Assembly (NCBI GenBank): GCA_964036045.1
Contig: OZ038379.1
Location: 8,122,001 to 8,186,000 of the forward strand
From: Eutreptiella sp. 'Long Island Sound 2002'
Lineage: Eukaryota; Protista; Euglenida
Length of the DNA: 64,000 nt
Reading direction: 5' to 3'
Shown here: one piece after another, positions 15,669 to 38,520 of the stretch
Numbering within the stretch: the first letter of the stretch is position 1
How the letters are laid out: every line of letters begins with the position of its first letter
The notes under the pieces: generated by a model
The model's input: only the letters and a program-made list of their open reading frames with translations
Told to the model about the DNA's origin: nothing
Databases searched by the model: none
Made by a program: the position numbers and the translations under genes

Positions 15669-16589
15669 CCCGCTGTAGCTTGGACAAGGCCGTAGCTAAT
15701 ACAAGGGGGGGAGGGGGGGTACTTTGTCTTTCGAAATTGGTTCAAAAGAGGGCACCAGGCGAGCGAGAGCCCCTCCAGAGGGGGACTTTCCACAGAGGTG
15801 TTTCGGTTAGTACACCGCATTACACGTGTCAATTTTGCGTGACCTGCATGTCTCTTGCGAGTGGGGGAGAGATGTGTGAGTGAAGTGTTTGTCGTCCTGC
15901 ACCCATCTGCCGCACGCCTGCAGAAGGGCGGAGGTTTCGGCAGAAGAACCCAAAGAGTTGCAACCACTTTGTTATCTGGCTCCCTCACCAGCCCGCAAAC
16001 CACTGGGAGAAGCAAATGTTCTGGAGAGGGGCTTGAGCAAGCCGGGGGGGGGCAGAAACATTTCACTGTGGGCGAAATTGGGCTATGACAGTGGAGCTTG
16101 GGCTTTTGCTGAAACATGGGGATGGACAAAGAGGCGGAACTGAAAAATTGTGACTTTCAGCAGAGGACGCCAAAGTGAGATGGTCGAACATCGCAATCGC
16201 CTTGCGTTCCATGGCACCCAAACTGCTGGCTGAGGGCCCCAAAGCATGGAAGTACTGTGCAATGTGCTACCACAGTCACAGAATGTGGAGCTGTATTCGG
16301 TTCCGCTGGTTTAGAGGGTTAGTTGGACGTGAACGTATCTGAATCACGCATTGAGCCCGGTCCCCGCTCGCTGACACACACACAAACACACGGATGCAAA
16401 AGCCCAGCAGAGGGGGAATGTTTGCCCCGCGTGTGCCCGGTGCGCTACTTTTCTATTAACTATCCCGACTTCAGCCCCAGATTTACCCTCTCATGAATAA
16501 GCCCCCCAAGTGGACCACGTTGGACTGCACACCCTCCCTACAAAGCACGTTGCATAATAAAGCAATAGCTGTGAATTCAACAACTCCAA

Positions 16590-17693: not shown

Positions 17694-17892
17694 TATCTCA
17701 AAGCATGGGTCTCTAGTACGGCCAGACACCCAAAGATTTTTTTTTTTTTGATCAAAAAGGCCAGTTCATAAGTGCCAGGGGCCACAGTGGACCAAGTTCG
17801 AAGTAAGATACAGATTTCGGCGAAGCCAGGGTATGCATACGGGCTGCAGCTCGTGACTGTGCCCCCATGGTTTCCCATTGAGGTTGGTGTAG

Positions 17893-20800
17893 TCATGTCA
17901 GTGGTACTTCCCACTCATTTGGGTCCCAGTGCGTTTTGTGGCGTTTCGGTAGCGGTTGTAACGGGACTTCCCACAAGGTGGGGTCCCAGTGCTCCCGCGG
18001 CCGCTTCCGTATCAGGTATATCGTCTGTCGGGCTGGTCGGGTTGTTTGCCAGTATTGTGTTGTCTTGTGTTTGCAGGCGTCTTGGTAGTACTGTGCCATG
18101 GCAGTCAGGTGTGTCTGCTGCTGCCACATGTAGGTCGCTTGTTGATGGTGCAGGTCAAGTAGTTTGGCAGTGCCTGCGCTCAGCCTCCAGTATCGGTCGT
18201 TGACCATCAGTAGCAGTTTTGCGTCAGTGTACCACATCCTTGTGTCGTCCTTCGCTTGTTCGTACCATTGCCTACGTATTTGGTATAGGTGTGCATGTGT
18301 GTCGTGCATTCGTTGTGTTTGTCTCTGTTGGTCGACTAGTTTTATGACAAGCCTGTGGTAGTCTGTTTTAGCCGTCAGTGCGTTGGTGTAGCCCATGTGT
18401 AGGGTGTGCAGGTGTTGTCTCGCCATCGCCTCCATGTGTGCTTTCTGGTATATGTCCCGTGCTTGCTGTGCGTGTTCATTTGCCAGCCTGTCTGTGGTCG
18501 TCTTGTACTGTTCCCACCGCTGTGTGTCAACGTTGAGGCGCTGACGTTTCTTTATGTGGTCGTCTGCCCCTGTGTTAGTGGCTCGTGCGACGAACCATGC
18601 CACTGCCTCACTATCGCCCGCGTTGCGTGCATCTTGTAACCATTGGCCGGGATCGATTGGGTCAGCCGTTGCGACCTCGGCCTTACGTTTGCGTTTCGCG
18701 CCGCACCACGTGGGCGCCCCGACTTGGTTCCGTAGGTTTCGGGGCGTTTCTCGCGGCGGAAGTGCCTGTGCCATGTATTTGGTGAGCCACAGGGGCGACG
18801 GTGGTTGTTGTGGTGTTGGGTCGGCGTACTTCCGTCTTAGTGTTTGGACGGACTGTATCATGCGAAACTGGAACAGGCCCACCTCCGTTCGCAGTTTGTG
18901 TCGTTCCGCAGTGGGTATGGCGTCGACGAGGGATAGTGGTATGAGCAGCCTGACACAGAGCCATAGTTCTTGGTTGTCGGCCGCTTGCAGCCATTGGTGC
19001 GTGTATGGGGCCCAATCAGTCCAGCTCTTGCGCCACAGGTCCCAGAAGTCGCTCCAGGCAGGACAGTAAGCCAGTTTTGACTGCACCGATGCTCCGTGTT
19101 GGTGGCCACACTGGGAGCAGAGGCGGGATGTCCGTTCCCAGGGGGCGCCCATTCCCCACCAACGCACTTGCCCCCACAGCCAGGGTGTCCACGCGTTCCG
19201 TCTGTAGTGCTTCATGGGGAGCCAGCTCACCCAGTGTACGTCTGGTGTTTGTTTTTGTCTACGCACTTGCATGATCCATGCCTTGGCAGGCGTGGGCATG
19301 ATCTGTCCTGTGATGACAATATCATGGGGTTGTGGTTGTTGGGAATCCATGGGCAGGTTGTCGCCCATATTGGCGAGGACGTCAGAGTGGTTGTTCCCCT
19401 GTATGTCCTGGTAGTCTTTATACGTGGTGGCTTGTTCTAGATTGCGGTGCCCTGGTGTCCATCGGATCGTCAGTCGTTTTGTGGTGGAGTTGAGGTACCC
19501 TATGTCGCGGTAGTCCTGGTCCTTGACCACTCCTTTGCGTTTTATAGGTGTGGCCTTCACCACACTCTGGTTGTCTAGTATAATGTCGTCTCCTGGCTTG
19601 GCCAGCTCTGAAGCTAAGGCGCAAGCGATCGTTTCGGCCCGATAAACCTGTTGTGGCCGGTGCACCCGGAAGGCCGAACGGTATGTTCCGTTGTAGATGC
19701 CCCCTCCCGCTCGTCCGTGTCGTTTCGACCCGTCTGTGTACCACCGGGTGGTGGTGGGTTCTCCTGTGTAGTGTATGGTGATCCCGTGGAGTTTTTGCTG
19801 GTGGGGGAGTGCCTGACAAACCTCATGGGTTTCCTCAGGGGTTGGCTCCTCTGGAGGGTTCATCCACCTGTAGTCCAAGCGGTTGGTAGCTGGCCGTGTC
19901 TTCCCTGTATGCGTCTCCTGGTCCTCCTCTGAGCTCTCCGAGTCGTAGAGTCCCGCGGACAAGGGTCGGTGTTGTCGGGGTTGGGATATACGCTGACCCA
20001 CCGTGCCCCCTAGGGCTCGGACGGCGTCTATGTATTTATATTGGGTTGCGGTGAGTTGTTGTGTAGGGCCGGTGCGCTGCAGTTCCTGTTGGCCAATTGT
20101 GACCCACCGGGTGATGTAGGACCACCACAGCTGGCGTAGGCCAAGTCCCCCGTGACTGAGGTTGGTAGTCAGCCGGTGTTTGTTCATTTGTTGTTCTACC
20201 CCGGGTGTATCCCTGATGAACTGCAGCAGTATGTCGTCCCAGTGCGCCATTCGTGTCCTATTTCCGAGGAACAGTCCCCTGTACGTCCAGCGGCGGATAA
20301 GGACGGCGTTGATGATAGCCACCTTTTCGTAGGCGTTGAGCGGCAGGGTCCTGTATGCCGCTACGTCGTGGTGTAGCTGCGTAGTGACCATGTCCCATGC
20401 TGTGTCTTCTTGTGTGGGGTGGGCAAGCACATGCCCCAGGTTAGTCATTATAGGTGGCCGCACGGGGATGAGCTGATGCCGCCACGTGATGGGCGTTAGG
20501 TCGTAGTCCTTAGCCCAGTGGCACACTTCAGTTTTGTCCTTGTTGAAGCGTAACCCCATTGTGTGGGCCACGTCGTGGAGGGTATCCAGGGTGTGCAGCA
20601 ATGCTTCCTTGGTGGGCGCACGCACAGCTATGTCGTCAACGAACACGTACAGTCGGGCTCCCGGGCATCGTTCCATGGTTTCACGTAATAGTATGTCGTA
20701 GTAAAGGAGAAATAGTGTTGGGGAGAGGGGGCACCCCTCCTTCATACCCCTGGTGGGTCGTATGGGTAGGTCCTTTCCGTGTAGGGTTAGTACGGCCGGT

Positions 20801-23031
20801 GTATGCTGGTATATTTCCCCCAACATCCGTATGATGTTTTCTGGTGCCCCTGCCTCCTTGACGATCCCAATCAGCATGGGTCGGGGGACTGAAGGAAAAG
20901 CTTTGGCCACATCAAGTAGGGCCACGTACCCGTCCTCAACGTGCAGGTCTTTTAATAGTTTCGTGGCTAACGTTGTGGTGTTTCGGCCCTGTGTGGCGCC
21001 GTGTTGTATGTCCAATAGTCCCGGGGTCAAGGCTCCCGATATACGCGTCAGGAGGAGGCGTGTGAGTATACTATATATGGCCGTGGATACGTAGATTGGC
21101 CGGTAGTTTCGTGGGTCCTGGGGATCCTTCTTTTTATAGATGAGCACTACCCTGGACTGCAGCCAAGCCACTGGGATGTGCTGTCCGTTCCAGACTGCAA
21201 CGATTGCCTGGTATAGTTGCCGCTGCACGTGGTCCGGTAGGTGCCGGAGCAGGTGTGGGGGGACACCGTCAGGTCCGGCAGATTTGTTCTTTGGTGCCCG
21301 AAGGCACCGCAAGTACTCCTCGTATGTGGGGGTCGTTGTGTTCCACGTGCGGTGCCGTACATGTTTCCGTATGAGTTGCCGGCACGCGTCTTCGTCGTAT
21401 GTTGGGTCGCCCGCAAAGTGGTTGAGTACGTACTGTGTTCCTCCTATTGGGGGCTGCGGTGTGTCCTGGGCTATGAGTCCAGTGCGCCATCTCTTGACCA
21501 TTTTATAAAAATAGCCCGATTTGTGCACTGCCGCTCGGCGCAGTTTGCCGATTTGTCTCCGTATGTGTTGCTCTTGTATTTCCCCGTACTCTCGTAACCG
21601 TGTTTTGGGGTCCGTGGTTTCCGACCAGCTTGCGGTGGTCGCTGTCTTTGTGCGCGTGGGTCGTCGTGGCCGCGCCGCGTGCGCTATTGCAGACAGGATC
21701 CGCCGTGCCGTGTGTAGGGGTGGGTCGTTGTTTGTTATGGGTAGTGTGGATATGGTGTTAGCAAACCGTTGAAATTGTTTTGTATACCACTTCGCGACTG
21801 TGGGCTGTGGTTTTCTGCGTGGTGGGTCGGGGACCCCTATCCTCCATCGGACCCCAAGCAGGACCAAAGCATGATGCGATATGGGCATTTGTATGGTGTC
21901 ATAGTAGGTCCAGGGTATGTTCGGTATTTGTTGCCTAATCAAGATGGCGTCTAGTCGACGTGGGCGTCCATGCCTAGGGATGCGGGTATAGTATTGCCGG
22001 GGGTCCGGGGGTTGGCTGCTAGCATGCAAAGGGTCCAGGAACACTCCGCTGGCCAGGTCTTCCTGCCACGGGCGTGTCGGGTTGGGTGACCAAATGTCAT
22101 CGTTGTAGTCCCCCATAATGATGTCGTATGGTCTCAGGGACTGCAGAAATAGGTCTACCTCTTGTTTGTCCTGTTGGTTGAATTTGGAGTACACACACGC
22201 AATGGTGCGGCGGGGGCTGTTTGGGAGCTGTATCCTGATGGCCCCTGCCAAACCGTTGGGTGAGTATAACGTTTCGAGTATGTGGGGGACCACATCGTTG
22301 CGGACAATGAAAGCTATCCGTGGTTCGGTCCCAGGCGCAGCGTAGCACTTGTAGTCGTTGCTGAGTGCTGTTGTGGCTGCCTCTGGTTTAGGGAAACCTG
22401 GGTGATACTCCTGGATGCCGCATAGGTCGATACGGCACTGGCTGATTAGGTGGAGGGTATTGGCCCATCGTTGTAGGCTGACGGATCCCTGTGCTCCTTG
22501 TATGTTCCAGGAGGCCAGTTTCATGTCGTGGTCCTTCGCGGTGGTTGCGTCGTCTAGACTGTCATACCGTCGATTGGTGTTGACCACCAGGTGTTGAGCA
22601 TACTCCTCAATGTCAAGCAACGGTATGGGGGGTCCCCGCACATCCCGGCATCCCCGCCGGAGCTGATATATCCTACGGTGCCCGGGGTTGGGGTGCACAT
22701 CTCCGCATTGGAGGACCCAGTTAGTGTTATACCGCGTGTTATATGGGCTGGTTACCGTGGTGATCGTGACAGGTGCATGGTAGCGGCATGGCGCTGCCGT
22801 GATTGGGGCGGTCGGGGTGTGGAAGAAACAGACGATATAGAGGAGGAGTAGGCCTGGCTGCCATATACGGTAACTATGGGGGTTGGGGCCCCGTGCGTAA
22901 CCGTGCCGGTGCCGTAACGGCGGGGTATATCGTCTGCGGACCCTCCGGTTCACGGGGAGTAGATATACCGGCCCCTCAGTATGCGTGGGGGCCAGGAGTA
23001 GGAGGAGGGCCATAATGGCGATGCAGGGCAT
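17893..23031 (-). CDS. Pol ORF: hydrophobic leader, 2A-like motif, APE endonuclease, RT, RNase H, CCHC, helical C-terminal extension (1712 aa)
   Basis: EN: SWNIQG, GIQE, MGDYND, RLDAIL, SHH (canonical SDH). RT: YRPI, LLDVAKAF, EGCPLSPTLF, FVDD. RNase H: YTDGS, AET, LDNQ, WTPGH, GNNHSDVLA. Zn finger: CSQCGHQH...C. Confidence 0.95.
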   Translation of the reverse strand: MPCIAIMALLLLLAPTHTEGPVYLLPVNRRVRRRYTPPLRHRHGYARGPNPHSYRIWQPGLLLLYIVCFFHTPTAPITAAPCRYHAPVTITTVTSPYNTRYNTNWVLQCGDVHPNPGHRRIYQLRRGCRDVRGPPIPLLDIEEYAQHLVVNTNRRYDSLDDATTAKDHDMKLASWNIQGAQGSVSLQRWANTLHLISQCRIDLCGIQEYHPGFPKPEAATTALSNDYKCYAAPGTEPRIAFIVRNDVVPHILETLYSPNGLAGAIRIQLPNSPRRTIACVYSKFNQQDKQEVDLFLQSLRPYDIIMGDYNDDIWSPNPTRPWQEDLASGVFLDPLHASSQPPDPRQYYTRIPRHGRPRRLDAILIRQQIPNIPWTYYDTIQMPISHHALVLLGVRWRIGVPDPPRRKPQPTVAKWYTKQFQRFANTISTLPITNNDPPLHTARRILSAIAHAARPRRPTRTKTATTASWSETTDPKTRLREYGEIQEQHIRRQIGKLRRAAVHKSGYFYKMVKRWRTGLIAQDTPQPPIGGTQYVLNHFAGDPTYDEDACRQLIRKHVRHRTWNTTTPTYEEYLRCLRAPKNKSAGPDGVPPHLLRHLPDHVQRQLYQAIVAVWNGQHIPVAWLQSRVVLIYKKKDPQDPRNYRPIYVSTAIYSILTRLLLTRISGALTPGLLDIQHGATQGRNTTTLATKLLKDLHVEDGYVALLDVAKAFPSVPRPMLIGIVKEAGAPENIIRMLGEIYQHTPAVLTLHGKDLPIRPTRGMKEGCPLSPTLFLLYYDILLRETMERCPGARLYVFVDDIAVRAPTKEALLHTLDTLHDVAHTMGLRFNKDKTEVCHWAKDYDLTPITWRHQLIPVRPPIMTNLGHVLAHPTQEDTAWDMVTTQLHHDVAAYRTLPLNAYEKVAIINAVLIRRWTYRGLFLGNRTRMAHWDDILLQFIRDTPGVEQQMNKHRLTTNLSHGGLGLRQLWWSYITRWVTIGQQELQRTGPTQQLTATQYKYIDAVRALGGTVGQRISQPRQHRPLSAGLYDSESSEEDQETHTGKTRPATNRLDYRWMNPPEEPTPEETHEVCQALPHQQKLHGITIHYTGEPTTTRWYTDGSKRHGRAGGGIYNGTYRSAFRVHRPQQVYRAETIACALASELAKPGDDIILDNQSVVKATPIKRKGVVKDQDYRDIGYLNSTTKRLTIRWTPGHRNLEQATTYKDYQDIQGNNHSDVLANMGDNLPMDSQQPQPHDIVITGQIMPTPAKAWIMQVRRQKQTPDVHWVSWLPMKHYRRNAWTPWLWGQVRWWGMGAPWERTSRLCSQCGHQHGASVQSKLAYCPAWSDFWDLWRKSWTDWAPYTHQWLQAADNQELWLCVRLLIPLSLVDAIPTAERHKLRTEVGLFQFRMIQSVQTLRRKYADPTPQQPPSPLWLTKYMAQALPPRETPRNLRNQVGAPTWCGAKRKRKAEVATADPIDPGQWLQDARNAGDSEAVAWFVARATNTGADDHIKKRQRLNVDTQRWEQYKTTTDRLANEHAQQARDIYQKAHMEAMARQHLHTLHMGYTNALTAKTDYHRLVIKLVDQQRQTQRMHDTHAHLYQIRRQWYEQAKDDTRMWYTDAKLLLMVNDRYWRLSAGTAKLLDLHHQQATYMWQQQTHLTAMAQYYQDACKHKTTQYWQTTRPARQTIYLIRKRPREHWDPTLWEVPLQPLPKRHKTHWDPNEWEVPLT

Positions 23032-23045
23032 GAGGAACAGGCACC

Positions 23046-23522
23046 TTACTTTTTCCCTTTGCCCTGCAGGTTTTTTGGCGGCCCCTTTCCTTTCCCCTTG
23101 TGTCTGTTGTCCACGGTGAAGGCAGCCGTACTGTCTGCTTGTTGTGTGGATTGCGGCGATGCAGGTGCTGCCTTCTTCTTTTTTGGTGGTGGCGTTGTTT
23201 TTGTGGGCGTTTTCTGTGGTGTCTTGTTGTGGGCCTTGGTTTTCTGTGCTGGGTGTGACTGCCGTGCGTGTGTTGTGGTTAATTTTGCCGGGTTGTCTGG
23301 TTGCTGGACGGGGGTTTCATCCGTGTCCGTGGTGGCCATATTTGGGTGGGTGTCTGATGGGGTGTCGTCGTTAGTGGTATGGCCGAGTTCGTTCAGGATG
23401 GCCTCGTCCCAGTCTTCCACGTTGATGGGTTCCGGCTCTGCGAACAGCTGCTTTTCCCTGTTGATTTCCTTGATGACGCGTTCAGTCATCATGTCTGAGC
23501 CCAGTTGTTTCCCTGCCTTCAT
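23046..23522 (-). CDS. 158-aa acidic/basic low-complexity ORF just upstream of pol
   Basis: ATG-started ORF with the element's A/C-rich bias. It overlaps the upstream stop as ATGA and ends in an A_AAA_AAC heptamer plus a stem-loop. Confidence 0.6.
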   Translation of the reverse strand: MKAGKQLGSDMMTERVIKEINREKQLFAEPEPINVEDWDEAILNELGHTTNDDTPSDTHPNMATTDTDETPVQQPDNPAKLTTTHARQSHPAQKTKAHNKTPQKTPTKTTPPPKKKKAAPASPQSTQQADSTAAFTVDNRHKGKGKGPPKNLQGKGKK

Positions 23523-26500
23523 TCGTCTCCTGAAGGCACGTCGTCGCCCGTTTCCTGCGGCATTTTGTGCGCGAGCATCTGGTCGATGCGCTCTGCCGCC
23601 TGTGTGTCCGTGTTGTCATCTCCTAGCGTGATGTGGACGTATTCACCGGGTGCCACTCCGATGTATTGTCCGGCACTGAGGGCCACTGCCGTGGCGTGCT
23701 GGTATTGGAGGGAGGCGTAGGTGCAGCCCGCGTCGCTCCACATGTTGGGTTCCGGCTTCCAGCTGGTCCAGCATCCAAAGAATGATGCCACGACTTTCGC
23801 CGTGTCGTCTCCTGCGCCCTGTGTCCACCCTACGAACACCGTCGTGGTGTCGTGTCTAGTCGGTTTTGGCGGTCGCTTGATGTCCCTAGAGCGGCTCGTG
23901 GACTGTGTCCAGTTGTTGCGGTTGAGGATGACGTTGGTCATCACGTGGACCAGTTCGTAGCTTTTCATGCCCTTTAGTAGTTGGGCAATCAAGCGTCGGT
24001 CTGCGTCTGGGTGGAATTGTACCAGTAGACGGTATGAGTCCACTGGTCGGAACCCCTTGAGGAAGGATGCAATGCTCCTTCCTAGCTCGAGCTGTTCCCT
24101 GTCCAGGTCGTCCAGTATCTCCTGTACGGACGTTATTCTGTCTTCTTTGTGTTCCGTGTATTGTTGTCTCAGTATATACAGGCTCTCATAGTCCGTTTCG
24201 GTGAGCTAGTAGGGTCCAGGGTTGCCGGCGTTTTCCTCCTCTTGTTTTATGGTCTGCAGTGCTTGTGTCAAGCGAGGCAGCAATTGCATGGGCAGGTGTA
24301 GTCTCCAGGCGTGCGACCCACTTTGTCCCGCGGTGTGTTCGGATGCGCACTTCCACCGAAAAGTGTTGTGGGGGTCTTTGCTTGCTATGGTGGATGCGAC
24401 GTCAGACTGGTGGCCCTTGATCCGTTTCATAAATGCGTCTCGCGTCCTAATGCCCGTTTCTGGTGGGCACTCCACTACGATTGTAGTCTTGGCCGGTTCT
24501 GGTTGTAGTGTGTCTGTGCGGTCTTCCGGTCCCACTTGTATGGGTGTGCCCTTCGTGAGTGCTTATGTTTTGTGCGTGGGCTCGTGTCCCATCTTTATGG
24601 TGTTGTCCAGGTGGAGGACCATGATGGGTTTGGGTTGTAGGTGGTCGACCATAGTTTCGTGTTCCGGGGACCACTTGCGCACGGGGAATTTGTCGAATTG
24701 GTATACGCCCCTTACATAGCGGGCCAGTTTGCGCAGGGGGGCGCGGTGGAGGCAGTCCATGCGGTAGGTTTGTAGTGCTGTAATGTCTTGGCGGTCCGCC
24801 TCGTAAGCCAGGATCAGTTCCTTGGCCCCCGGGTCGCCGAGTGCCCGTAGGACTTGGTCAACCCGTTCGTCCTCGCTTCCGCCCCATTCCGTTTGTATGG
24901 CGGCGCGCTGCATGCGTCGTTCATGGTTGCGGCGGGTCCCGGTTGCCTGTGGCAGTAGTAAGTATGTCTTGTTCCGGATGTCTGGGTTCCCTTGATGGTC
25001 GGCTTCCGTGTGTACTGTGTATTGGTGTGCTTCGGCCATCTCGGATACCGTGTGTATACCGTCAGAGTCTGCCTCATGCCTCACCGTCATGACGTCGCGC
25101 AGTTTGTGTTGCGCACACAGAGGGAGTTGGTAGGTGTTCCTGTCATACCATACCCCTTCCTGTGTTTGCCTCCTGATGTGCTCTGTGGTCACTGCACGGT
25201 TTGGGTGCTTTGTTAAGTAAGTTTTTAGTCTGGTTTGTGCGTCGTACACAACTGATGCTTTCAATGTGTCTTGCTCTGCTGTAGTCATTGGTTGTTGTGA
25301 CGCGCCTGTGTTGAGCTTTACGAGTTCTTCTATAAGCTGGTATTCCGTAGGTGTGTGTATGGGTAGTTTGTCCAGTGGGTTGTTGCCGTCTTCGTGGAAT
25401 GTGTATGCCTGTGTATCCTCTTGGGGTGGAGGGGGGACGTAACTAAGCCCTTCGGTGTGTTGGTCAGGCGGTGTGCTAGGTTCCCCATTCTGGGGGGGTT
25501 CCCGCTCAGTGGTATCCTCTGGTGGGGGGTTTGAGGTTGACTCCAGGATGTCCGGGTTTTCCATTTCGTCCCCTTGGTCTTGCACACCAGTGTGCAGTCC
25601 GGACGTGTGTCTTTCGTAGTTTTCTGCCAGGGTGCGCACAAGTCCATGGGGCGGGGCGTTGCTATCCGGGCCTGGGTTTGGTTCCACATCACCATCCTGC
25701 GTGGCATCCGGCACCCATTGGGTGTGTTGTGGGTAGACCACGTCTGGGGTAACGGATGTGACCCTGTCATGGCGCACGTCCGATGGGTGGTCGGGTGGCA
25801 CCCAGTCGGTGGTGTCATACTCCAGGAGCAGGTCGTGTTGCAAGGGTTGGACCAGAAAGAGCCAGTATCGTATGGATACGGCCATTTGGAAGCCCTCCCT
25901 CGTGCCCGTGAGGACATGCAGTCTGTGTCTTGCGATGTGGTAGTATGGGAGGTCAGTCCTGAGGTGTACCTCCCACAGTTGGCCTGTTGTGCTAGGTAGC
26001 CTCCTCCACACGTTGTATGCCAAATGCACTGGCGGGTTGGGAGTTGCGCTGTGATCCGTGTATGTGAGGAGTCTGTTGTTGTAGATTTGTATGTGGAAAT
26101 ACACATATGTTGGGTCATCCGGGGGTGGGGGGGGTATCTTTGGTTGCAGAGTGCCGCGGCACAGTGGGCATCTTAGCAGTCGTGGGTCGTTGGCGCAGTC
26201 CTGGCACAGCCTGTGCCTGGGGTCGCAGCTCAGGTGTGTATCCGCGGGGCTGTCCAAGCATACGGGGCAGTCCTCTAGGGCCCGTCCACCGTCATCCGTG
26301 TTCCACGAGTGTTTGTGCACGTCGTCGTTGGGCTGGCGGGGTGGTGGTGCCGCCAGCAAGAGCGGTGGCAGAGTGTTGTGCACCTCAGTCCCCATGTCCC
26401 CCAGCGGTGTGGTCTGGGCTGTGCGCTCCACTGCGGGTGTGGTTGGTCCGGGGTTGGGCTCTGTGTCTCCGTCTTGAGTCGGGTCGTGGACCCAGCTCGT

Positions 26501-27793
26501 TGGTCTCGGGTAGGGGCGATTGCGTAGGCGTTGTGTTCCGCGGATCTTCAAGCGTGGTGAGTCACCCATGACTTGGTCAGTGGTGTCTTCATATGTCCGT
26601 TTCATGCGTAGGTTTCCTTGGTTCCCGGGGGGGTGTTGCTCGTCCCAGTGAGTCGTGCTCTGGTGCCTTTTGGGTAGTGGTTGGTGGGTAGGTTCCCCGT
26701 CCGCCTTTCGTTTGTGGTGGTTATATACCAGCGTTGACGATTGATGCTCCCGGTTCGCCATGGGTACGTGGTCTGCGCGCCTCCGTTTTTGTCTAGGGGG
26801 AGTGTTGTCCGCGGTGCGTTTGCGTAGCATCCTAGGTGTTTGGTACATATGTGGTGTGTCTTGGTTGTATCGCGTGCGTTTCGCTGAGGGTGTTGATGGG
26901 CTGGGACCGGGGTTAGGTTCGACATCCCCGTCGCTTGTGACGTCGCGTAACCATCCGTCCGGGGTGTCCTCCACGGTCGGTCGGGGGCCCGTCTCGTGTG
27001 GTACTGGTGTGTGGCAGGTTTGCGAGGTGGTGGCCGGTATGGCCTGTTGCCAGGATTCTTGTCGTGGGTATAAGGGGTCTGGGGACATCACGTTGTAGAG
27101 TCGCCGTGGTACCACGTCTGGGGTATCCGGTTGGTGTATGGCAAAATACTTGCATGTGGTGCAGCGGAAGTACACAAAGTCGGCCATGTTGCATCGGGGA
27201 CAAACTACATCGATGGCTGTGGTCATGTTTAATCCTATCGGTGAGTGGTGTTTTTGTGTTTTTACAGTCAACTCGGAAGTTTCCAAGGGGGCGGGTCGTG
27301 GTGTGCCTGGGTCATGTACCCCTTGCACCAGGGGTGCCTCTGGTGATGGCACCTCCAATGTGCCATGTGTGGTAGACGGTTCTGCACATGGAGCGGGTGT
27401 GTTGTGTCCTAAGGGAGGGGTGGATGCGCGCCGCTTTTTTTGCAGTGCCTCTGTGAGTGCCTGTGTCGCGTATTTGTATAGTTTAGCGGGGTAGTGGGGG
27501 TTGGAGGCCGTTTCGATCTCGCTAGCCAGCCGGGTGACCATCTCTCTGTGCTGGGGGGGGGTGTCGTTCCCTGTGGTCTGCGCATCTTCAGGCCCCGGGT
27601 TCTTTTCGTTTGCAAAGGCGGAGCACAAGAACACTGCACAGAACTTGGGACTGCAGTACAATGTATCACCAAGACCGGCGATGCCGGCGATAGAATGCTG
27701 ACCCTGCCCTCCAAGAGAGCCATGGCTGCCCGCATATAAAGCGGACGCAGTCCCTGCGCACAGCGGGCAACGGACGAGACTGACACAACACAA
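23519..27793 (-). CDS. Polyprotein with three 2A/StopGo motifs, a C4 Zn ribbon and a RING-HC; one reading frame broken by two in-frame stops
   Basis: Track ORFs 24563..27793, 24206..24535 and 23519..24043 share one frame and are separated only by TAA (24563-24565) and TAG (24206-24208). DGD(V/T)EPNPGP at 26903-26932, 26444-26473 and 25667-25696. The true start codon is uncertain. Confidence 0.8.
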
Positions 27794-28036
27794 GTACCTG
27801 GGAACGAAAAAGTCACCCCCTCAACATGTCAGACTGCCGCCACCTGAGACGGTGATCATGCTGGACCCAACCACACGCAACCATGGCACCCAATAAAGGG
27901 CGGGGTGCAGCATGCAACCCCCCCAGACAAAACTAGACACGGTTGGGGTCCGGTGGGCGGACGGCCGAGCCCAAAAGCGGTGCGGCCGCCGTGGGTGGGT
28001 GGGCGAGAAAAGACAGAAAAACTGCCTAAGAAAGGA

Positions 28037-29638
28037 CACTGCACAGAACTTGGGTATTCATTCTCCGCCGCAACCCTCCCTGCCCCCCCCCCCCCAGCCC
28101 TAGCCACGCACTGGTGCCATCAGGAACCCGCTGGGCATAGCGCCGCCGGGGAACCTGAAGGGTTGAAACTGAGTCCTAAAACCCCTCTGAGTCCTAAACC
28201 CCCCCCCCCCCAACCCATAAAACTCCCCATGGGCCTTAGGGCCGGCACCGCAAGTCAAGACAGCCAAAGCGACGGGCGATACGGGCTGTATGCTCCCGGA
28301 CCCACACACGGTGATGGCGACACAGCGGCAACAGCATCGAATCCGTCAGCGCCGAGTAGGGCTGCAGGTGGGCGCCCGGCTGCTCTGCAGCCAAACGGCC
28401 ACGGCGCCGGGCGCAACTCAGCCAAGCCGAGGCTCACTCAGCAACTCAGCAACGAACCAAGGTCCATAACACCGGCCTTAGGGCCAACACTGCAGGTAGC
28501 CAGATGGGGCTTTGGCTCAACAAATTGCTTACGTTGGCGGTGCTGGTGCCGCGACTGTCATCGCTGTTGGTCCCGTTGCTATCAACGCCAGTGCTCGAAG
28601 CATCCACGACTTCAGAGGGCGTGTGGATCGCGTCGCGCATCGAGAGGGCGGCGGCGAGCAACATCTGCGCCAGTCCTTCAGCGCTGACGCTGCCAGTGCC
28701 GCTGCTCATGTTCCCGCTGTTGCCAATGCCAGTGCTCGAAGTTCCACGCCTGCAGGTGATGTGGCGACATAAAGGCAACCACATCGCTGTTGCCACCGCC
28801 AGAACTGCTGGTGCCGCTGCTGCTGCCGCCAGCGTCACTGCTGCCTGCTGCTGCCGCGGCTCCCAGAGCTGCTGGTGTTGCTGGTGCCAGTTTCACCGCT
28901 GCTGGTCCCGCTGCCGCCAACGTCGGGTGTTGATGCTCCTACCACTGCACATGGTGACGGCGATAGAGAGGCAACACCACTGTTGCCGCCGCTGCTGCAG
29001 AGCTGCCAACGCGGGTGCTGGTGCTGCCAGTGTCACTGCCCCGGCGGCGGTGGTGAAGGACCCGACCGAGCGCAGCGTCAAACCGTCGTGCGCAAGCGTC
29101 TCCAGCGCAGGGGCCCTCTGCAGCGACGCAAGCAGGCCGCACTGCATGTACTGCACCGCAGCGTCGAGCCCGTCGTTGAGCTCCTGCAGGTCCGTTGCCG
29201 AGAAAGCCTGGGCGGGCGCGTCCACCTCCGTCTTGAAGGCCGCCACCGACTGCGCCACAACCTCCGTCGTGCCGTTGGCCGTGAGCTGCAGGACTGCCAC
29301 AATGTCTGCGACCAGCGTGGCGACCTCGGAGGAGCGGCTTGAGCCGCAGAACCATGTCCACGGCGCACTCGACATTGTGCACGACCGCCGGCAGTAGCGC
29401 CGGGCCCCGCCCCGCGTCCGCCAGGGCCTTGACCTCGGCGACGGCGGGGGTCAGGCCCACGAGCACCGCACTCTCGACGGTGGCCAGTCCGTGGTCCCTT
29501 CTCAACCCCCGCGATCTGCTTCATGCGGTCCAGGAAAGGAGCCGCAGCACCCGCTTGTCGCCTCAGCATGCTGACCCGCCGGCACCGGCCCTCGGGCCCA
29601 TGGGGAGAGGGCAGAACACTACCCCCCCCCTACAAATT
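28037..29638 (-). other. GC-rich cassette inside the LINE, between 28-bp direct repeats, with frameshifted Ala/Ser/Thr/Gly-rich coding remnants
   Basis: Direct repeat at 28009-28036 and 29639-29666. Inverted repeat at 28225-28250 and 29580-29605. ORF pieces 28893..29375 and 28446..28838. Composition differs visibly from the flanking G/T-skewed sequence. Confidence 0.55.
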
Positions 29639-29655
29639 AAAGACAGAAAAACTGC

Positions 29656-32600
29656 CTAAGAAAGGAAGCGCAAACAAAAGTTGAAACGAGGTTCAACTAG
29701 TGATATCACCGTCGACCGTGCGGTCCCGCAACAACCCAATGAGGGCGGGGGGGTGTCGTCGATTGTTGGGGGGTGCCTGCCTAGATGGTGGGTCGCAAGG
29801 CAGTTCCTCTCCCATGAGGGGGGGGGGGGGTGTCCCGAGGGGTAGGGGGGTTCCTCACGATACTGTGGCAATAGCATGAAGGGATCTGATCCAGGAAATG
29901 CGTGTATTCTGGTCATTGTCGCAGGTGCCTGTCCAGTCCGATGCCCGTCGGTCGGCACCTGCGCGGCGTCCCCGCGTACTGATGGCCGGTTTGGGGCCAT
30001 ATATGACATTCCTGTCTGGTTATCGTGTACTGCCTGTCGCTGGTCAGCAGACTGGGCATTACCGGGGGCGTCGAGCGCGCCCACACCGGTGTGTAGAGCG
30101 GGAGAGTAGGCGGTGGCCAAGGGCCCAGCCGGGTAGGTGCCAGTAGCGCCTGCCATCCCCACGCATGGTCGGCAGGCGGGCACGTTCACACGGCCCGTCG
30201 CTTTCGCAGCCCGTTGCCTGTCTGTCTGGCCCCGCGCTGTTGATGGCCGGGTTGGGGCCATATATGACATTCCTGTCTGGCTGTCCTGTGCTGTCCGTTG
30301 CTGGTCAGCACGCCGAGCATCACCGGGGGCAAAGAAAGCGCCCACGCCAGTGTACCCGGATAAATAAACTGCGGCCTGGTAGGCAGTGGCCAAGGTCCCG
30401 GCCGAGTGGGTGCCAGCGGCACCAGTCATTAGCGTGCATGTCTGAGGAGCAAAATCCTTACGGCCGACTTGCCACCGTGCGGTCACCGTGCGGTCGACGC
30501 GGTCCGTTCCAGGTTGTCCGTTCCCGCTGTTCACTGTGGAGAATGGCGCAAGGCAGGTGTTGGGAAGGTAGCCACAGTCTAACGCTGTTCCCCTCATGCA
30601 TATGTATGCACATACCAGCACATCAGGTGACGCGGTATCTCGTTGATCAGGGGGTGGAATGGTGGGGATGTTGGGGATGGCCGTCCCCAGTTCCCCCTTG
30701 TGGGTCCTGGGTCGGCGCCTCCTTCCTCGCGGCTGCCGGGGGGGTGCCTGCTGTTCTTGCTGTGCGGCCACCACGTCCCAGCCTCCAGTGAAGGGGAAAA
30801 CCCCAGCCTGTCCCCAGCCGGATGGTTCCGGTCCCTGTTCTGGTGCCTGCTCTGCGTGTGCATCGTGCCACGGTGCCCTTTCCCCGTGGATCTGAGGGGG
30901 TCCGGGCTGGTGCACGGGGTGCTGGTCTGGTGCGTCCGGTGTGTAGTACACTTGCTGGTGCTGTTGTGAGTGCCCCGCTACCGGCGCCGACTCCGGAATC
31001 GGATAGACAACACTGTCCGTTGGTAGTTGGCGGGGGGCATGCGGGTCCGCCAGTGGTCGTGTGCGATCCCTTGAGAGCCACATGTCCAGATATCCCGTTG
31101 CCGGTTCGGCATCTGTGCGTCGCTGCATCGGTGGCTCGGTTCGCAGGATCTCGAGCGCAGCTGCATTCTGCTCGCTGAACCTGGCCCAGGTTCCTGAACT
31201 GTCCTCTGGCAGTATGTGCTGTCCATGGCGGTCGACGACTACCCGATACTGCACCTGTGGTTCGTGCTGTGTCTGTGGTACATACAGTGGTTCACTGTGG
31301 TACACCGGCTGCGCCGCCGTGTGTTCCATGCGTGTGGCTGCCCGGTATTGCACCTGAGGTTCGTGCTGTGTCTGTGGTACATGCAGTGGTTCACTGTGGT
31401 ACACCGGCTGTGCCGCCGTGTGTTCCATGCGTGTGGCCGCCTGCTGTGGGAGGGGCTGTCGGTTTACGTCCCTGTGTCCCTGTTGGAGGGCAGGGACCGC
31501 ACATGGCACCTCCGGGCTGTGAGGATTGCGGTAGAAACGCAGCGGTTCAGCCACAAAAGTTGGGGGGCAGAGGGGTGGGTGTTGAGGCTGCTGTCCGGGT
31601 TCTTGCAGGGAGACTTGTCGTTCCCCTTGGCGCGTGTCGATGCTCACGCAGTAGCGTCGTCGTGCCTGTGGTTCCGCCTCGCCTTGTGACGGTTCTGCCT
31701 GGGTGCGGGCTTGGTCACTGTGTCTGTCAGCGCTGCGCTGTGGCGCTGGGGCCTCAGGCGTCACGGTTTGCTGTGGTTGCTGGATCGACCGGCAGATTCC
31801 TGCTACAGAGTCCGCAAGGGACGTCATGGCCCGCAGGGCCTGGGTGAGTTCGCCCTTGGAGCTGCGCTTCCGGGACTTTTTCCGTCGGCTGTGGCTGTCA
31901 CTGTCGCTGTCGCTGGTGCTGTCACTGTCTGTGTCTCTCCGTGACCGTCTGCCTCCCCCCTTCAGACCCACCAGTCGCAACGTCAGGTGGATGGGTCCGG
32001 TTGTGGTCGTGGTCGGGGTCGGGTCGTGGTCTCCGAGCGGCTGTCCTTGGTAGAACAGCCGCTGGTGTTGCGGTGGGGGTAGGTGTGGCGTGAGGTGATG
32101 GAGGGCATGTTTGATGCCCTTGACTGACCCGGTTGCCGGAAGGCAAACCGGGGGTCCGGCGCCGCTCACGATCACCGACCTACAGCGCCACGCAGGGTGG
32201 GGTTGGGAGGGGGGGGTGGATCGATGTGAGAACGCCGTGTTGCGGCAATTCCTAGTTCGCGAGCAGTGCGGTGTATGCGATGGCAACGGTGTCACATGCA
32301 ACACAGGGTGTATGCCCGGTCGTCGGTGCAGTTCCTGCGCAGAAAACTGCGCAGCGGTTACGGTGTGGTTTGGGTAGTGACACGGACGGGGAGCAGGGCT
32401 CCGCACCGTCGTTATGGTTGGCATTGTTGGCGGGGAGCGTCGCTCCGCTCCGCCGTTGGCCATTCCGTAGCGTGTCGTGATGTTTTGGTACGTTGTCTGG
32501 TTGGTGGTGTTGGCTGGCGGGTAGCAGGGCTCCACTCCGCCGTCTCCGTTGTGTAGCAGGAGCAGGATGATGTGTGTCATCAATCCTATGTAGCACAGAG

Positions 32601-33588
32601 GTCGTGGCCTCCATGAGGTCGTTTTGTTGAGTCGTACAGTGGCATGCCAGGGGCGGGGAGCGAGGCTCCGCACCGCCGTTGTGTTGTTCTCTGTCCTGTC
32701 GGTTGTGTCCGGCGGTTGGTTGTCGGTGTTTGGGCGGGGAGCTGAGCTCCGCACCGCCGGTTGGATGTTTGGGTGGGAGGCATACCTGGCTCGCGGCGGT
32801 GCGGCATCCGGCAGTCTCAGGCCATCCAAACGGCGAGCGTCTGCGTTACCGACGTCCATAGTTGACGGGCCGACGTGGTACGCGGTCGTACCAGTGACTC
32901 CTTCGACAGAGGTTCGTCCATCCGATCCCACGGCGGCAGGTACGTCAGTCGGGACGTTCGGGTAGATCTCTGCCAATTCCGGGTCATAATGATTCTCCAT
33001 AGTCCCGTAGACTCCGGGGTACTCGTCAGATGCGTTCTCGTTGACCTCTGTGGTCTCAGCCATGTCCATCACTTCGCCGACATCCCCAGCGTTGCGCAGG
33101 GCAGAAGTGTCGGGGGCATACTTGATATCCTGGCTGGTGGCCGTCTCCATGATTGCCTGTCGTTGTTCGGCATCGTCAATCTCTGTCCTCGGGACGCCCG
33201 ACTTGTCGATGAAATCGTCTATCGCTGGGTCAAAGCGGGTGTACTTGATCTCGTTCCCCTTCTGCGCAGTGATGGTCCCGGGATCGTCAGAGAGGCCCAA
33301 GGGGTTGAAACGGTTGGCCAGGTTGTCGGCTGCTTGGTCGATGATATCGCTGGAGTCCTCAGTAGTGGCGCAGGCCTGCACGTAGTTGTCCAGCATGGCG
33401 ACAGTTGCTGCTCTCATCGGAGTCGAAGGGGTCAGAAGTGGAGCGGTGAGCGTACCAGTAACTCCTTCGACAGAGGTGCGTCCATCCGATCCCACGGCGG
33501 CAGGTATGTCGGCCGGGACGGTCGGGTAAATCTCTGCCACCTCCGGGAGGTGCGGCATTGCATTCTGCCCCACGTTGGGGTCTTCCAT
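29656..33588 (-). CDS. ORF1 of the giant element (1310 aa), repeat-rich, with an internal ubiquitin-like domain
   Basis: The first ATG lies 17 nt downstream of the SL. Ubl-like stretch VKGIKHAL...PPPQHQRLFYQGQPL...IHLTLRLVGLKGG at ~31954-32178. Several internal duplications. Confidence 0.75.
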   Translation of the reverse strand: MEDPNVGQNAMPHLPEVAEIYPTVPADIPAAVGSDGRTSVEGVTGTLTAPLLTPSTPMRAATVAMLDNYVQACATTEDSSDIIDQAADNLANRFNPLGLSDDPGTITAQKGNEIKYTRFDPAIDDFIDKSGVPRTEIDDAEQRQAIMETATSQDIKYAPDTSALRNAGDVGEVMDMAETTEVNENASDEYPGVYGTMENHYDPELAEIYPNVPTDVPAAVGSDGRTSVEGVTGTTAYHVGPSTMDVGNADARRLDGLRLPDAAPPRARYASHPNIQPAVRSSAPRPNTDNQPPDTTDRTENNTTAVRSLAPRPWHATVRLNKTTSWRPRPLCYIGLMTHIILLLLHNGDGGVEPCYPPANTTNQTTYQNITTRYGMANGGAERRSPPTMPTITTVRSPAPRPCHYPNHTVTAAQFSAQELHRRPGIHPVLHVTPLPSHTPHCSRTRNCRNTAFSHRSTPPSQPHPAWRCRSVIVSGAGPPVCLPATGSVKGIKHALHHLTPHLPPPQHQRLFYQGQPLGDHDPTPTTTTTGPIHLTLRLVGLKGGGRRSRRDTDSDSTSDSDSDSHSRRKKSRKRSSKGELTQALRAMTSLADSVAGICRSIQQPQQTVTPEAPAPQRSADRHSDQARTQAEPSQGEAEPQARRRYCVSIDTRQGERQVSLQEPGQQPQHPPLCPPTFVAEPLRFYRNPHSPEVPCAVPALQQGHRDVNRQPLPQQAATRMEHTAAQPVYHSEPLHVPQTQHEPQVQYRAATRMEHTAAQPVYHSEPLYVPQTQHEPQVQYRVVVDRHGQHILPEDSSGTWARFSEQNAAALEILRTEPPMQRRTDAEPATGYLDMWLSRDRTRPLADPHAPRQLPTDSVVYPIPESAPVAGHSQQHQQVYYTPDAPDQHPVHQPGPPQIHGERAPWHDAHAEQAPEQGPEPSGWGQAGVFPFTGGWDVVAAQQEQQAPPRQPRGRRRRPRTHKGELGTAIPNIPTIPPPDQRDTASPDVLVCAYICMRGTALDCGYLPNTCLAPFSTVNSGNGQPGTDRVDRTVTARWQVGRKDFAPQTCTLMTGAAGTHSAGTLATAYQAAVYLSGYTGVGAFFAPGDARRADQQRTAQDSQTGMSYMAPTRPSTARGQTDRQRAAKATGRVNVPACRPCVGMAGATGTYPAGPLATAYSPALHTGVGALDAPGNAQSADQRQAVHDNQTGMSYMAPNRPSVRGDAAQVPTDGHRTGQAPATMTRIHAFPGSDPFMLLPQYREEPPYPSGHPPPPSWERNCLATHHLGRHPPTIDDTPPPSLGCCGTARSTVISLVEPRFNFCLRFLS

Positions 33589-33605
33589 GGACGAAGAAAT
33601 AGCAC

Positions 33606-33633
33606 CGAAAAAAAAATAGACACTCAGAAAGTG
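33606..33633 (-). other. Euglenid spliced-leader exon sequence
   Basis: Reads CACTTTCTGAGTGTCTATTTTTTTTTCG. This matches the Euglena-type SL ACTTTCTGAGTGTCTATTTTTTTTCG (recalled from memory) with one extra T; the extra 5' C fits the longer AC-start form I recall for Eutreptiella. Confidence 0.9.
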
Positions 33634-34649
33634 ACGGCCAGACACCCAAAGAGCTGCACTGCGCTAAGCGCGCCCCCTTAGTGCACCCCCTGAAAGGTCA
33701 CTGGTGGGACACGGGTCAAAAAAGATGCCCGGCGCGCGCCCGGCGCACTAACGCTCCCCCAGAAATGCAGAAAGAATACCTCAAATCTGGGCTACAAGCG
33801 CCCAGGATGGCCATGGGAAAGCAGCCTGTGAGCAGACCTAACTGGTGAATGGGGGAGCCTCTGGCTGTACTCCCACCCCCCCCTTGCCCCTGTAAGACCT
33901 ACGCAAAAGTCCCAAATTAATACGGTCCCTACGCCTACTGTAGCTTGGACAGGGCCGTAGCTTCCACGTAACACATACAACTACCAACACACACGTGAGT
34001 GAACGCATGGTATGAGTGCACCTTCACGTCCACCCACGTTCCCAAAGGCATGCAAACACAAGAAAGTGTTTGAAATATGAAACTTCAGGTTCAGACCAAT
34101 GTTCTCATAAGTGCAGAAATATCTCCAAAATCAGAGCGATGCCAGTTCAAGTGGGCAAACACTCACAACAAATGTCTCCATGACTCTATGCAACTGACAA
34201 ATTCGTCACCAAACCCATGTCTTATGTGGCTGCACTACATTTAGTACCGCATTAAATTGGGTCCAAAAAAAATACGGTCCCTATGCCCGATGTAGCTTGG
34301 ACAAGGGCACAGGGGGGCAGGGGGTACCCATGGGGTGGCCTTCCTTCATCACCAGGGGATGCATCCAGACAGCCCAGATGGAGGGGAATGTCTGTCCAAC
34401 CCATGGGCTATGCTCCTAAATGTGCAAAAAGGGAAGCCAACTGCTTGTAGGGGATCGGCTCCGCCAGCACATCAGGGGCTGGCGGACCCAGTATGTCAAC
34501 AGGGGGACAAGCCAGAGGAAGGGCTTAAGGCGAGGGGCAGGAAACAGGGACAACTGCAGTGTGCCATACCCATCCCTGTGGGGGTTGGCGGCAGATATCG
34601 GGCGTACAGCCCTCATGCTGTCCAGTGGGACCAGCAGTAAGCTAAGAAG

Positions 34650-37600: not shown

Positions 37601-38520
37601 GATGACAGGCTGGAACGGGGAACTGCAGCAGAGCCAGAGGGGTCAGTGTTGAAAGGTCTCTGACAGGGTGATGGAAGAGGTCCCACCCTCCCTGCGAACA
37701 CGCTCCTGGCTCCCTGCATCCAATATCCCGTACTGCCATGCCCACATCCTTGAAGACTGGATGGCACCAAGGAAGAATGAAACTGAAGCTGATGCAGGCG
37801 GCCTTCCATCTGGATTGAGGAGGGGTTGCTGATCCAACAACCCGAGAAACAGACGGGTGGACGGGCTGTTTGAGAGGTTTAGTTTGGACCACACCTTCCG
37901 GGGAATGCCGCAGGAAACAGATCTCTCAAAGCCATGACCATTCGGGGTCACACATTGGAAGATACTTGGAGAGCGGGGAGATTGTTGACCAGAGGAGCCG
38001 TCAACCCTTTGATGTATGTTCCAATGCACCCATGTGAAAGAAAGGGAGGGATCAACCCAAGGAGCTGACCACCTGCTGTTCCAATGCAGACCTGCTTGTG
38101 TTGCTCTTCGCTCTGGAGTGGGAACGTGGTGCTCCAGGTGAAGCAGCAGTTGTCGTGATGTGCATCTGCCATCCAGAGACAGAGAGAATCCGTGGACAAC
38201 CCTGTCATACGGTGGTAATTCTGATTTTGCCGCTGGAGATCTTGTCTCCAGTCCATTTCCAGCACGACTCACAGGGCGCCACCTGCAAATGCAGGGGACG
38301 CTGTTGTCTGTGTGCAGAGCACCGTGCAATGCGGTGCCACACCGCGTGCCGGTTCACGCGGCAGTCAGCGCAAAGGCTGCTGCGGAGATTAGTTTGAAGT
38401 AGAAGCGTAACACGCTTGTCACTGACATCCTGCCCCTTGCTGCAGATTTGCACCCACCCGCCCAGGATGCAGTATATTGTAAGGTATGCACCTGACATGA
38501 GAACTTCGAGAAGTGTTAAG
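34650..38520. repeat. Tandem array of about three 1333-bp units
   Basis: The marker AATCCACGTGCCCTGCATTGC recurs at ~34654, 35987 and 37320, and the ORF-track entries repeat with the same period. Confidence 0.95.

Follow-up and report, generated by a model that had tools for sequence, protein, structure and literature searches.

The 64,000-nucleotide stretch of contig OZ038379.1 from Eutreptiella sp. 'Long Island Sound 2002' that is analysed here (positions 8,122,001 to 8,186,000 of the contig, hereafter the window) contains one defective copy of an abundant, recently active euglenid family of long interspersed nuclear elements (LINEs), and this family has four canonical-type 2A/StopGo sites in its first open reading frame (ORF1) together with a fifth, variant site in its second (ORF2). 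The reading that we favour, to which we assign a probability of roughly 0.75, is that the element would be expressed from one mRNA, that its ORF1 product would be divided at three and possibly all of the four sites, and that its ORF2 product might be divided at the fifth. One messenger should then give rise to up to seven proteins.

2A/StopGo sequences are known in LINEs as a single site per element, nearly always at the start of the ORF2 protein (ORF2p), as against four plus one here: the roughly 50 LINEs described by Odon et al. (2013) have a single 2A-like site apiece, which lies at the N-terminus of ORF2p in every case but one, the ORF1 case being inactive (PMC3708506), which bears out the premise of the original prediction for this DNA that LINEs normally carry at most one such motif. 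Among genes in general, a maximum of three sites in a eukaryotic gene and of six in viruses has been reported (Rao et al. 2025, PMC12338488). The present family has more StopGo sites than have been reported for any cellular gene in the literature searched.

Sites and their sequence contexts

Relatives of the window copy were sought by protein searches, which gave matches on many contigs in a single ENA assembly (ERZ25074135), and nine loci were fetched altogether. Five of these (L001 to L005) hold young copies; older subfamilies, with 31-56% identity, were obtained by an exhaustive profile search of the same assembly, and the loci L006, L007 and L008 were used to represent them. The sites are named m0 to m3 in ORF1 and m5 in ORF2. 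A six-frame scan of the window finds six NPGP or NPGH tetrapeptides, all on the minus strand and all inside the LINE:

27590..27601, minus strand: remnant of StopGo site m0, EKNPGP; other copies read ...LLRDRTVDGDIEKNPGP at the same place
26903..26953, minus strand: StopGo site m1, WLRDVTSDGDVEPNPGP, canonical core, NPGP at 26903-26914; present in all six young copies
26444..26494, minus strand: StopGo-like site m2, WVHDPTQDGDTEPNPGP, Thr at core position 13, NPGP at 26444-26455
25667..25717, minus strand: StopGo site m3, WVPDATQDGDVEPNPGP, canonical core, NPGP at 25667-25678; present in all six young copies
24212..24223, minus strand: NPGP within EEENAGNPGPY, Ala in place of the essential Glu
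22678..22719, minus strand: site m5, WVLQCGDVHPNPGH, non-canonical StopGo-like (GDVHPNPGH, NPGH at 22678-22689), ORF2 residues 105-118

The three serial motifs that had been proposed from the sequence, m1 to m3, are real: in translation of the minus strand they share one open frame, an open stretch of 1,076 codons, and the pattern D.E.NPGP, observed three times, appears in none of 300 composition-preserving shuffles of the sequence (for E.NPGP the shuffles give 0.05, compared with four observed). The position proposed for the first motif was right, apart from its Trp codon, which lies 21 nt past the end coordinate then given. The count of three proved too low for the family. The full m0 (…DGDIEKNPGP), disrupted in the window copy, is present in related copies, where it is in frame with both neighbours (P0002, P0004, P0006, P0007, P0009, P0010), and the non-canonical m5 ends a 117-residue leader of ORF2, 55 residues before the endonuclease. 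The NPGP at 24212-24223 was considered as a fifth ORF1 site and rejected on account of the Ala that replaces the essential Glu; the region homologous to it is 93% identical in L006 and 77% in L007, figures which refer to the region and not to the motif.

The core octapeptide (D/G/C/N)(V/I)ExNPGP is found in m1 and m3 (DVEPNPGP) and in the m0 of relatives (DIEKNPGP), but not in m2 (DTEPNPGP) or m5 (DVHPNPGH). Both departures recur in relatives. The Thr of m2, which the original prediction had singled out as non-canonical at the V/I position and which is read directly in the translation, is kept in L006, and the L008 counterpart of m2 is DTESNPGP; m5 is identical in L001, L002, L004, L005 and L006, and reads GNVHPNPGQ in L007.

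Upstream of the core, the four ORF1 sites follow the pattern W/L-x-x-D-x-T-x-D-G, continued by D-V/I/T-E-x-N-P-G-P, and the W, D, T, D and G of m1 to m3 are in register, while m0 begins L-L-R-D. In class B peptides the Trp at the N-terminus is critical, as is its register (PMC12338488), and motif 4 of Li et al. (2026), WV(R/K)DLTx[acidic]G followed by D(V/I)ExNPGP, has a representative that is about 100% active in vitro (PMC12846837). The present sites share with motif 4, and with class B and hybrid A/B peptides, the N-terminal Trp, the D-x-T-x-D-G before the core, and Gly11, Asp12 and Pro15; they differ from motif 4 in having V, P, A or R for the Leu of DLT, Leu for the Trp in m0, and Thr13 in m2. 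The upstream contexts thus bear a strong resemblance to motif 4, which they appear to fit closely though not identically.

One relative carries a further arrangement: at L007:10163-10261 two canonical sites (…EDGDVERNPGP and …QDGDVEPNPGP) stand 29 residues apart, nearly back to back as in some RNA viruses.

Selection on the sites and on the intervening modules

The comparison between subfamilies indicates that all five sites are under purifying selection across lineages whose intervening proteins have diverged strongly. The three older-subfamily loci keep the sites in the same order, and the motifs are far better conserved than the 50 residues which flank them (for example, 16 of 17 residues against 47% flank identity, and 15 of 17 against 35%; between subfamilies the flanks are 24-58% identical). 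In the comparison of subfamilies, 98 motif codons yield 45 synonymous differences and 13 that are non-synonymous. Taken singly, m1 and m2 each show eight synonymous differences from L006, accompanied by two non-synonymous differences in m1 and none in m2; m3 shows nine and two, respectively, in comparison with L007, and m5 five and none in comparison with L006. Within the window copy, m2 and m3 have 14 of 17 residues in common, 12 of which are specified by different codons, so that their nucleotide identity is 32/51. The use of different synonymous codons, and the selection at the protein level that the original prediction drew from it, are both upheld.

The modules between the sites behave differently from the rest of the element. 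Ratios of non-synonymous to synonymous substitution rates (dN/dS) lie between 0.27 and 0.51 in these accessory modules, compared with 0.08 in the core of ORF1, and between subfamilies the modules are 36-57% identical, compared with 60-93% for the core and the ORF2 domains; to judge from these values the modules are coding, but fast-evolving. They appear to be an extension peculiar to this lineage, added upstream of an ancestral ORF1, because a related LINE, L009, has the core ORF1 and ORF2 alone. This element, which is the sole relative found outside the source assembly and comes from another sample (a 7.5-kb contig of JGI metagenome 3300061547), encodes a 670-residue ORF1 protein that matches the core alone (29-38% identity) and an APE-RT-RNase H ORF2, and no NPGP is present anywhere in its contig. 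The possibility that the modules are paralogues of one another was considered and rejected, there being no similarity between them outside the motifs (all E>0.06).

Structure of the element

The host of the motifs is a LINE of the APE-RT-RNase H type, that is, with an apurinic/apyrimidinic-type endonuclease, a reverse transcriptase and a ribonuclease H-like domain. The original prediction had called it a LINE, and this identification is secured by the APE and RT domains, a poly(A) tail, target-site duplications and 5'-truncated copies. Its principal features are as follows:

17737..33633, minus strand: whole LINE copy, 15.9 kb as found, about 13.8 kb without one nested insertion
33634..33652, minus strand: 5' copy of the target-site duplication, 19 nt; the identical 19 nt follow the poly(A) tail
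17718..17736, minus strand: 3' copy of the target-site duplication
17737..17749, minus strand: poly(A) tail of 13 A; other copies have tails of 8-13 A at the equivalent point
33606..33633, minus strand: 5' terminus, the Euglena gracilis spliced leader plus one extra T (leader matched in PMC6242988 and PMC5654406)
23046..33588, minus strand: ORF1, about 2,800 codons, ATG at 33586-33588, 45 nt from the 5' end of the element, stop 14 nt before the ORF2 ATG
17893..23031, minus strand: ORF2, 1,712 residues, an uninterrupted frame from ATG to stop; each domain 83-98% identical to its counterpart in other copies
21931..22515, minus strand: APE-type endonuclease domain (Pfam Exo_endo_phos, E=5.8e-10, 39.7 bits, above the gathering threshold)
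20506..21135, minus strand: reverse transcriptase domain (Pfam RVT_1, E=3.3e-25)
19369..19749, minus strand: RNase H-like domain (Pfam RNase_H, E=0.0012, 19.5 bits, below the gathering threshold, profile positions 4-137 of 141); its homologue in L009 has a Pfam E of 5.4e-4

The window copy is colinear with L001 to L005 at 92-97% identity. The copies have a common 3' end and variable 5' truncation (L002 and L005 are 5'-truncated), they lack long terminal repeats, and each of those in the window, L001, L002, L004 and L005 is bounded by its own target-site duplication of 18-20 nt. The nearest reverse transcriptases outside the family are unnamed and just 25-33% identical. An RNase H domain is a feature of the LINE groups I, Ingi, Tad and LOA.

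The spacing of 14 nt between the ORF1 stop and the ORF2 ATG recurs in L002, L004 and L005, and ORF2 lies in a different frame. The window copy has an interrupted ORF1: comparison with the uninterrupted ORFs of other copies shows a single nested insertion of about 2.1 kb, two frameshifts and two in-frame stops. The ORF1 polyprotein therefore belongs to the family as a whole and was pieced together from open frames that overlap between several copies: each ORF1 junction is read through in the open frame of at least one copy (P0009, P0006, P0002, P0004, the window stretch, the L004 ORF, P0001 and P0005), with coding sequence on both sides of the sites (P0002, P0004, P0006, P0009, P0001 and the L004 ORF). 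The virus-like polyprotein of the original prediction accordingly holds for the family, although not for the window copy itself. The ORF at 29656-33645 was examined as a possible unrelated gene and rejected, since it is the 5' part of ORF1 and matches the long upstream protein in other copies.

Two parts of ORF1 have unusual structures of their own. The nested insertion has 63% G+C and contains an exact 28-nt direct repeat with its two units 1.6 kb apart, a 28-nt inverted repeat pair and degenerate repeats of the GCTGCTG type; no relatives of it are found in the nine fetched loci or in the rest of the window, and its ORFs have no Pfam match. Copies that are otherwise 92-97% identical cannot be aligned with one another at the DNA level over the first 0.7-1 kb of ORF1 (32890-33588 on the minus strand of the window, L001:8721-9650, L004:7447-8200 and L003:7612-8610). 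There are two types of ORF1 start, M-E... in the window and L003 and M-P... in L001 and L004, and in the window copy a 97-nt direct repeat (33451-33547 and 32887-32983) flanks the start region on either side.

The spliced leader at the 5' end

Full-length copies open with the 27-28 nt spliced leader directly after the target-site duplication. Apart from the window copy, it is found at L001:8661-8687, L003:7578-7604 and L008:3541-3566, and in L004 it occurs twice (7351-7376 and 7387-7412), the two leaders being 9 nt apart. The explanation that the leader is target DNA of a site-specific LINE was rejected, because each copy has a different target and the leader is situated within the target-site duplications; the leader therefore belongs to the retroposed RNA. 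It follows from the presence of the leader at the 5' end of full-length copies that the host is a euglenid, as had been guessed from the letters alone, and that the template for retroposition is the mature trans-spliced mRNA. The double leader of L004 suggests that a copy already carrying a leader went through transcription and trans-splicing a second time before it was retroposed.

Relic spliced leaders, sometimes in tandem, were reportedly described in retroposed dinoflagellate genes by Slamovits and Keeling in 2008. The resemblance lies in DNA copies that open with the host leader and derive from reverse-transcribed mature trans-spliced mRNA; the difference is that here the retroposed mRNA is the LINE's own, in a euglenid. 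In the literature searched there is no paper that links Euglena with NPGP or with leader-bearing LINEs.

Predicted products

Division of ORF1 at m0 to m3 would yield five products, here called P_N, P_A, P_B, P_C and P_D:

N-terminal part of ORF1, minus strand: P_N, about 1,300 residues, rich in Pro, Ala, Thr and Arg
31951..32193, minus strand: possible ubiquitin-like domain in P_N with a run of Gly at its end (Pfam ubiquitin, E=2.3e-4, 21.3 bits, cut-off 25.4, part of the profile)
26906..27592, minus strand: P_A, 229 residues, acidic (isoelectric point, pI, 5.6), with a four-Cys zinc ribbon at 27152-27202
26447..26905, minus strand: P_B, 153 residues, basic (pI 10.6, 18% K+R), no Cys, no domain match, dN/dS 0.27 in comparison with L006
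25670..26446, minus strand: P_C, 259 residues, with a C3HC4 RING-like finger at 26159-26269
23049..25669, minus strand: P_D, about 870 residues in intact relatives, the conserved core ORF1 protein, broken in the window copy
23627..24181, minus strand: two beta-alpha-beta-beta-alpha-beta units in P_D (AlphaFold2 model, mean pLDDT, the predicted local distance difference test, 55)

The lengths that had been predicted for the second and third products of the window frame (153 and 259 residues) are exact in translation, as is the lower bound of at least 368 residues for the last, the full length of which is about 870 residues in relatives. The protein predicted to stand at the N-terminus does have its zinc ribbon, but it is not N-terminal, because about 1,300 residues precede it.

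Pfam and PDB sequence searches with P_N, P_A, P_B and P_D gave nothing above threshold, and the assignments for these products draw on weaker matches and on conservation. The ubiquitin-like segment of P_N matches NEDD8 and ubiquitin chains in the PDB weakly (E about 0.03), over nearly their full length. Among 13-15 relatives at 50-95% identity, 11-14 keep the four Cys of P_A, and the Pfam zinc-ribbon matches are faint. P_C appears from its sequence to be RING-like: its spacing is C-x2-C-x10-C-x3-H-x2-C-x2-C-x8-C-x2-C, all eight ligands are kept in relatives while a non-ligand His is not, Pfam zf-C3HC4_3 is matched with E=2.2e-4 (21.4 bits, below the cut-off of 27), and the RING domains of SIAH1, cIAP and RING2 in the PDB are matched with E of 6e-4 to 0.03.

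P_D is read through without interruption in P0001 and P0005, and it is the sole part of ORF1 with a homologue in L009. Its two beta-alpha-beta-beta-alpha-beta units are probably, though tentatively, tandem domains of the RNA recognition motif (RRM) type which would bind RNA, since nearly all of the top Foldseek matches of the model are tandem-RRM proteins (E from 3.6e-4, with TM, or template modelling, scores of just 0.2-0.3); no RRM match is found at the sequence level in Pfam and PDB searches. A 940-residue AlphaFold2 model of P_D was too poor to be used (pLDDT 36).

The 117-residue leader of ORF2 (22681-23031, minus strand) has a hydrophobic start resembling a signal peptide and a second hydrophobic run. 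It is 38-61% identical between subfamilies, with its last 14 residues kept, and it recalls the 2A-like signal sequences of sea urchins that give dual targeting (PMC4981915).

Proposed mode of expression and alternative explanations

According to the reading that we favour, transcription of the LINE and trans-splicing of its RNA to the spliced leader would give a single capped mRNA for translation. On reaching m0, m1 or m3, and possibly m2, the ribosome would release the chain after ...NPG and continue from the Pro, so that ORF1 would be expressed as separate proteins, namely the possibly ubiquitin-like P_N, the zinc-ribbon protein P_A, the basic P_B, the RING protein P_C and the RRM-like core P_D; ORF2 may shed its 117-residue leader at m5. 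In a host whose mRNAs each acquire their cap through trans-splicing, StopGo would thereby let one mRNA serve for a number of accessory proteins that evolve fast. The sequences make separation likely at m0, m1 and m3 and possible at m2, and it may also occur at m5. In E. gracilis, a fusion through the 2A of foot-and-mouth disease virus yielded both activities (PMC8230907).

Animal APE-type LINEs (CR1, L2, Rex1, Crack and STR; PMC3708506) likewise recode translation by means of virus-like 2A sequences, with an additional domain between 2A and APE in some of them, but no serial array and no multi-protein ORF1 is described there. L1Tc of Trypanosoma cruzi and Ingi of T. brucei, as they are presented in PMC3708506 after Heras et al. 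(2006), also have euglenozoan hosts and an N-terminal 2A in the location of m5; in that account they have one site each, while in the present family the ORF2 site is non-canonical, with His at positions 14 and 19, and four more canonical-type sites divide a very long ORF1 into accessory proteins. Picornavirus polyproteins (Paavivirinae and avihepatoviruses; PMC11512398, PMC13149134, bioRxiv 10.64898/2026.09.24.754024) are split by several StopGo sites of the same flavour, W-x-R-D-L-T-x-D-G-D-V/I-E-x-N-P-G-P. There is no homology to them outside the motifs, and the present element is a DNA-resident retrotransposon which has APE, RT and RNase H-like domains and has neither capsid nor protease.

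Several considerations weigh against the favoured reading. The skipping of the ribosome, and with it the separation of the products, is inferred here from sequence, and two of the cores are at odds with what is known of the motif. In mutational scans of F2A and P2A, Val13 can be replaced by Ile alone (bioRxiv 10.64898/2026.09.24.754024), and Thr13, as in m2, is absent from the enriched functional variants (PMC12846837). The core of m5 deviates at two positions; rare variants with His at position 14 and with Met or Trp at position 19 are functional, but Met and Trp are the only variants at position 19 that have been shown to be so, whereas m5 has His or Gln there (PMC12846837). Chimeric upstream contexts are often inactive (PMC12846837). 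Only 7.4% of 2A peptides from reverse-transcribing elements are highly active in human cells, and in a second screen most retrotransposon 2A-like peptides lower protein abundance rather than cause skipping (bioRxiv 10.64898/2026.06.17.732966). Domain assignments other than APE and RT lie below curated thresholds or depend on a low-confidence model. Finally, an uninterrupted ORF1 was present in no copy reached, a result obtained under search length limits that could have hidden a full-length product, and the longest open stretches of ORF1 are of 1,276, 1,186 and 1,095 residues.

Alternatively, the sites could act mainly as translational attenuators, through stalling and drop-off, in which case there would be a falling gradient of products along ORF1, ORF2p would be throttled and much of the product would remain fused. 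The 2026 screen found that 2A-like peptides reduce abundance in 70% of ORF1p and 59% of ORF2p cases (bioRxiv 10.64898/2026.06.17.732966), most peptides from reverse-transcribing elements are in the middle range of activity in human cells, and the cores of m2 and m5 are conserved in spite of being non-canonical. However, the assays in which a reduction was seen used human cells and not the native ribosome, the cores of m0, m1 and m3 are perfect and carry the upstream signature of a class that separates at about 100%, and the modules between the sites are distinct domains without mutual similarity, which fits separate proteins. We consider attenuation as the main role of the sites to be unlikely on balance.

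A still less probable explanation is that the motifs are inactive relics, and that ORF1 is translated as one giant protein or is cut by host proteases, for example after the Gly run of the ubiquitin-like module, the possible presence of which speaks for such cutting. Several 2A-like sequences of Nematostella LINEs are mutated and tested inactive (PMC3708506). The very large synonymous excess within the motifs, while their flanks diverge, is difficult to reconcile with a loss of function, there is no reason for an inactive 17-residue string to persist four times, and Pfam and PDB searches find a protease domain in none of the products.

The upstream part of ORF1 could also have been taken over from an RNA-virus polyprotein, as an endogenous viral element that became fused to a LINE. 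The class of motif is typical of RNA viruses, serial sites that divide a polyprotein are a viral layout, and the sole match of the 1,076-residue stretch outside the family is to an avihepatovirus (picornavirus) polyprotein with five such sites (QUS52569.1). That match runs through the five motifs and is confined to them (five short stretches of about 22 residues, E=1e-4), no module matches a viral, capsid, protease or polymerase family, and in every copy the modules lie upstream of a LINE-type core ORF1, within the same unit, which has target-site duplications at its borders and poly(A) at its end. A viral origin is in our judgement very improbable.

An artefact, either of assembly or of chance open frames in a decayed repeat, might be suspected behind the array, given a defective copy in what looks like a long-read assembly, but this can be dismissed in view of six independent copies on different contigs with their own target-site duplications, three older subfamilies with the same order of sites, and shuffles which give none.

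Other features of the window

The LINE lies among other repeated sequences. At 13618-15687 on the minus strand there is a separate ORF of 689 residues with a reverse transcriptase domain (Pfam 4.7e-23); it has no DNA similarity to the LINE studied here, and it presumably belongs to another retroelement. On the other side of the LINE, the regions 34644-43674 and 52706-62570 contain a segmental duplication (36788-43674 matches 55689-62570 at 98.4%), which carries a 966-residue ORF with DEAD-box helicase domains (39068-41968 and 57945-60845); this ORF is preceded by tandem repeats of about 1.33 kb, the ORFs of which look non-coding. Used as a query, the helicase ORF gave matches in the source assembly alone, and the window has no match in Rfam. 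Dispersed repeats of 0.4-1 kb, 89-98% identical, occur around the LINE at 1-4000, 33760-34380 and 46800-52400, and they are found in the flanks of L001 and L002 as well.

Significance

The arrangement of sites and modules points to a retrotransposon that expresses an accessory set of proteins (zinc ribbon, basic, RING and possibly ubiquitin-like) in the fashion of a picornavirus, with intervening proteins that evolve several times faster than the core while each of the sites is held. The family also supplies two conserved natural variants of the StopGo core, Thr13 on the one hand and His14 with His or Gln at position 19 on the other, which current rules would call inactive and which bear on the question of how strict the motif is.

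In its most extended form, the proposal would be that all five sites work in euglenid ribosomes, including DTExNPGP and DVHPNPG-H/Q, that seven proteins are made from one LINE mRNA capped by the spliced leader, and that the RING protein and the ubiquitin-like module are used against or through the host ubiquitin system. We regard this as doubtful, although it is a possibility of some consequence: were it true, the StopGo rule would be widened, since the residue after the skipped bond would not have to be Pro, Met or Trp, and the element would be a retrotransposon that relies on trans-splicing for its propagation and has an accessory proteome of viral size.

The leader at the start of the copies identifies the template as a trans-spliced mRNA, and it thereby provides a rationale for the arrangement as a whole: one cap and one initiation would serve for many proteins. 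Euglenids are marked by these elements as a lineage in which retrotransposition and trans-splicing are coupled.

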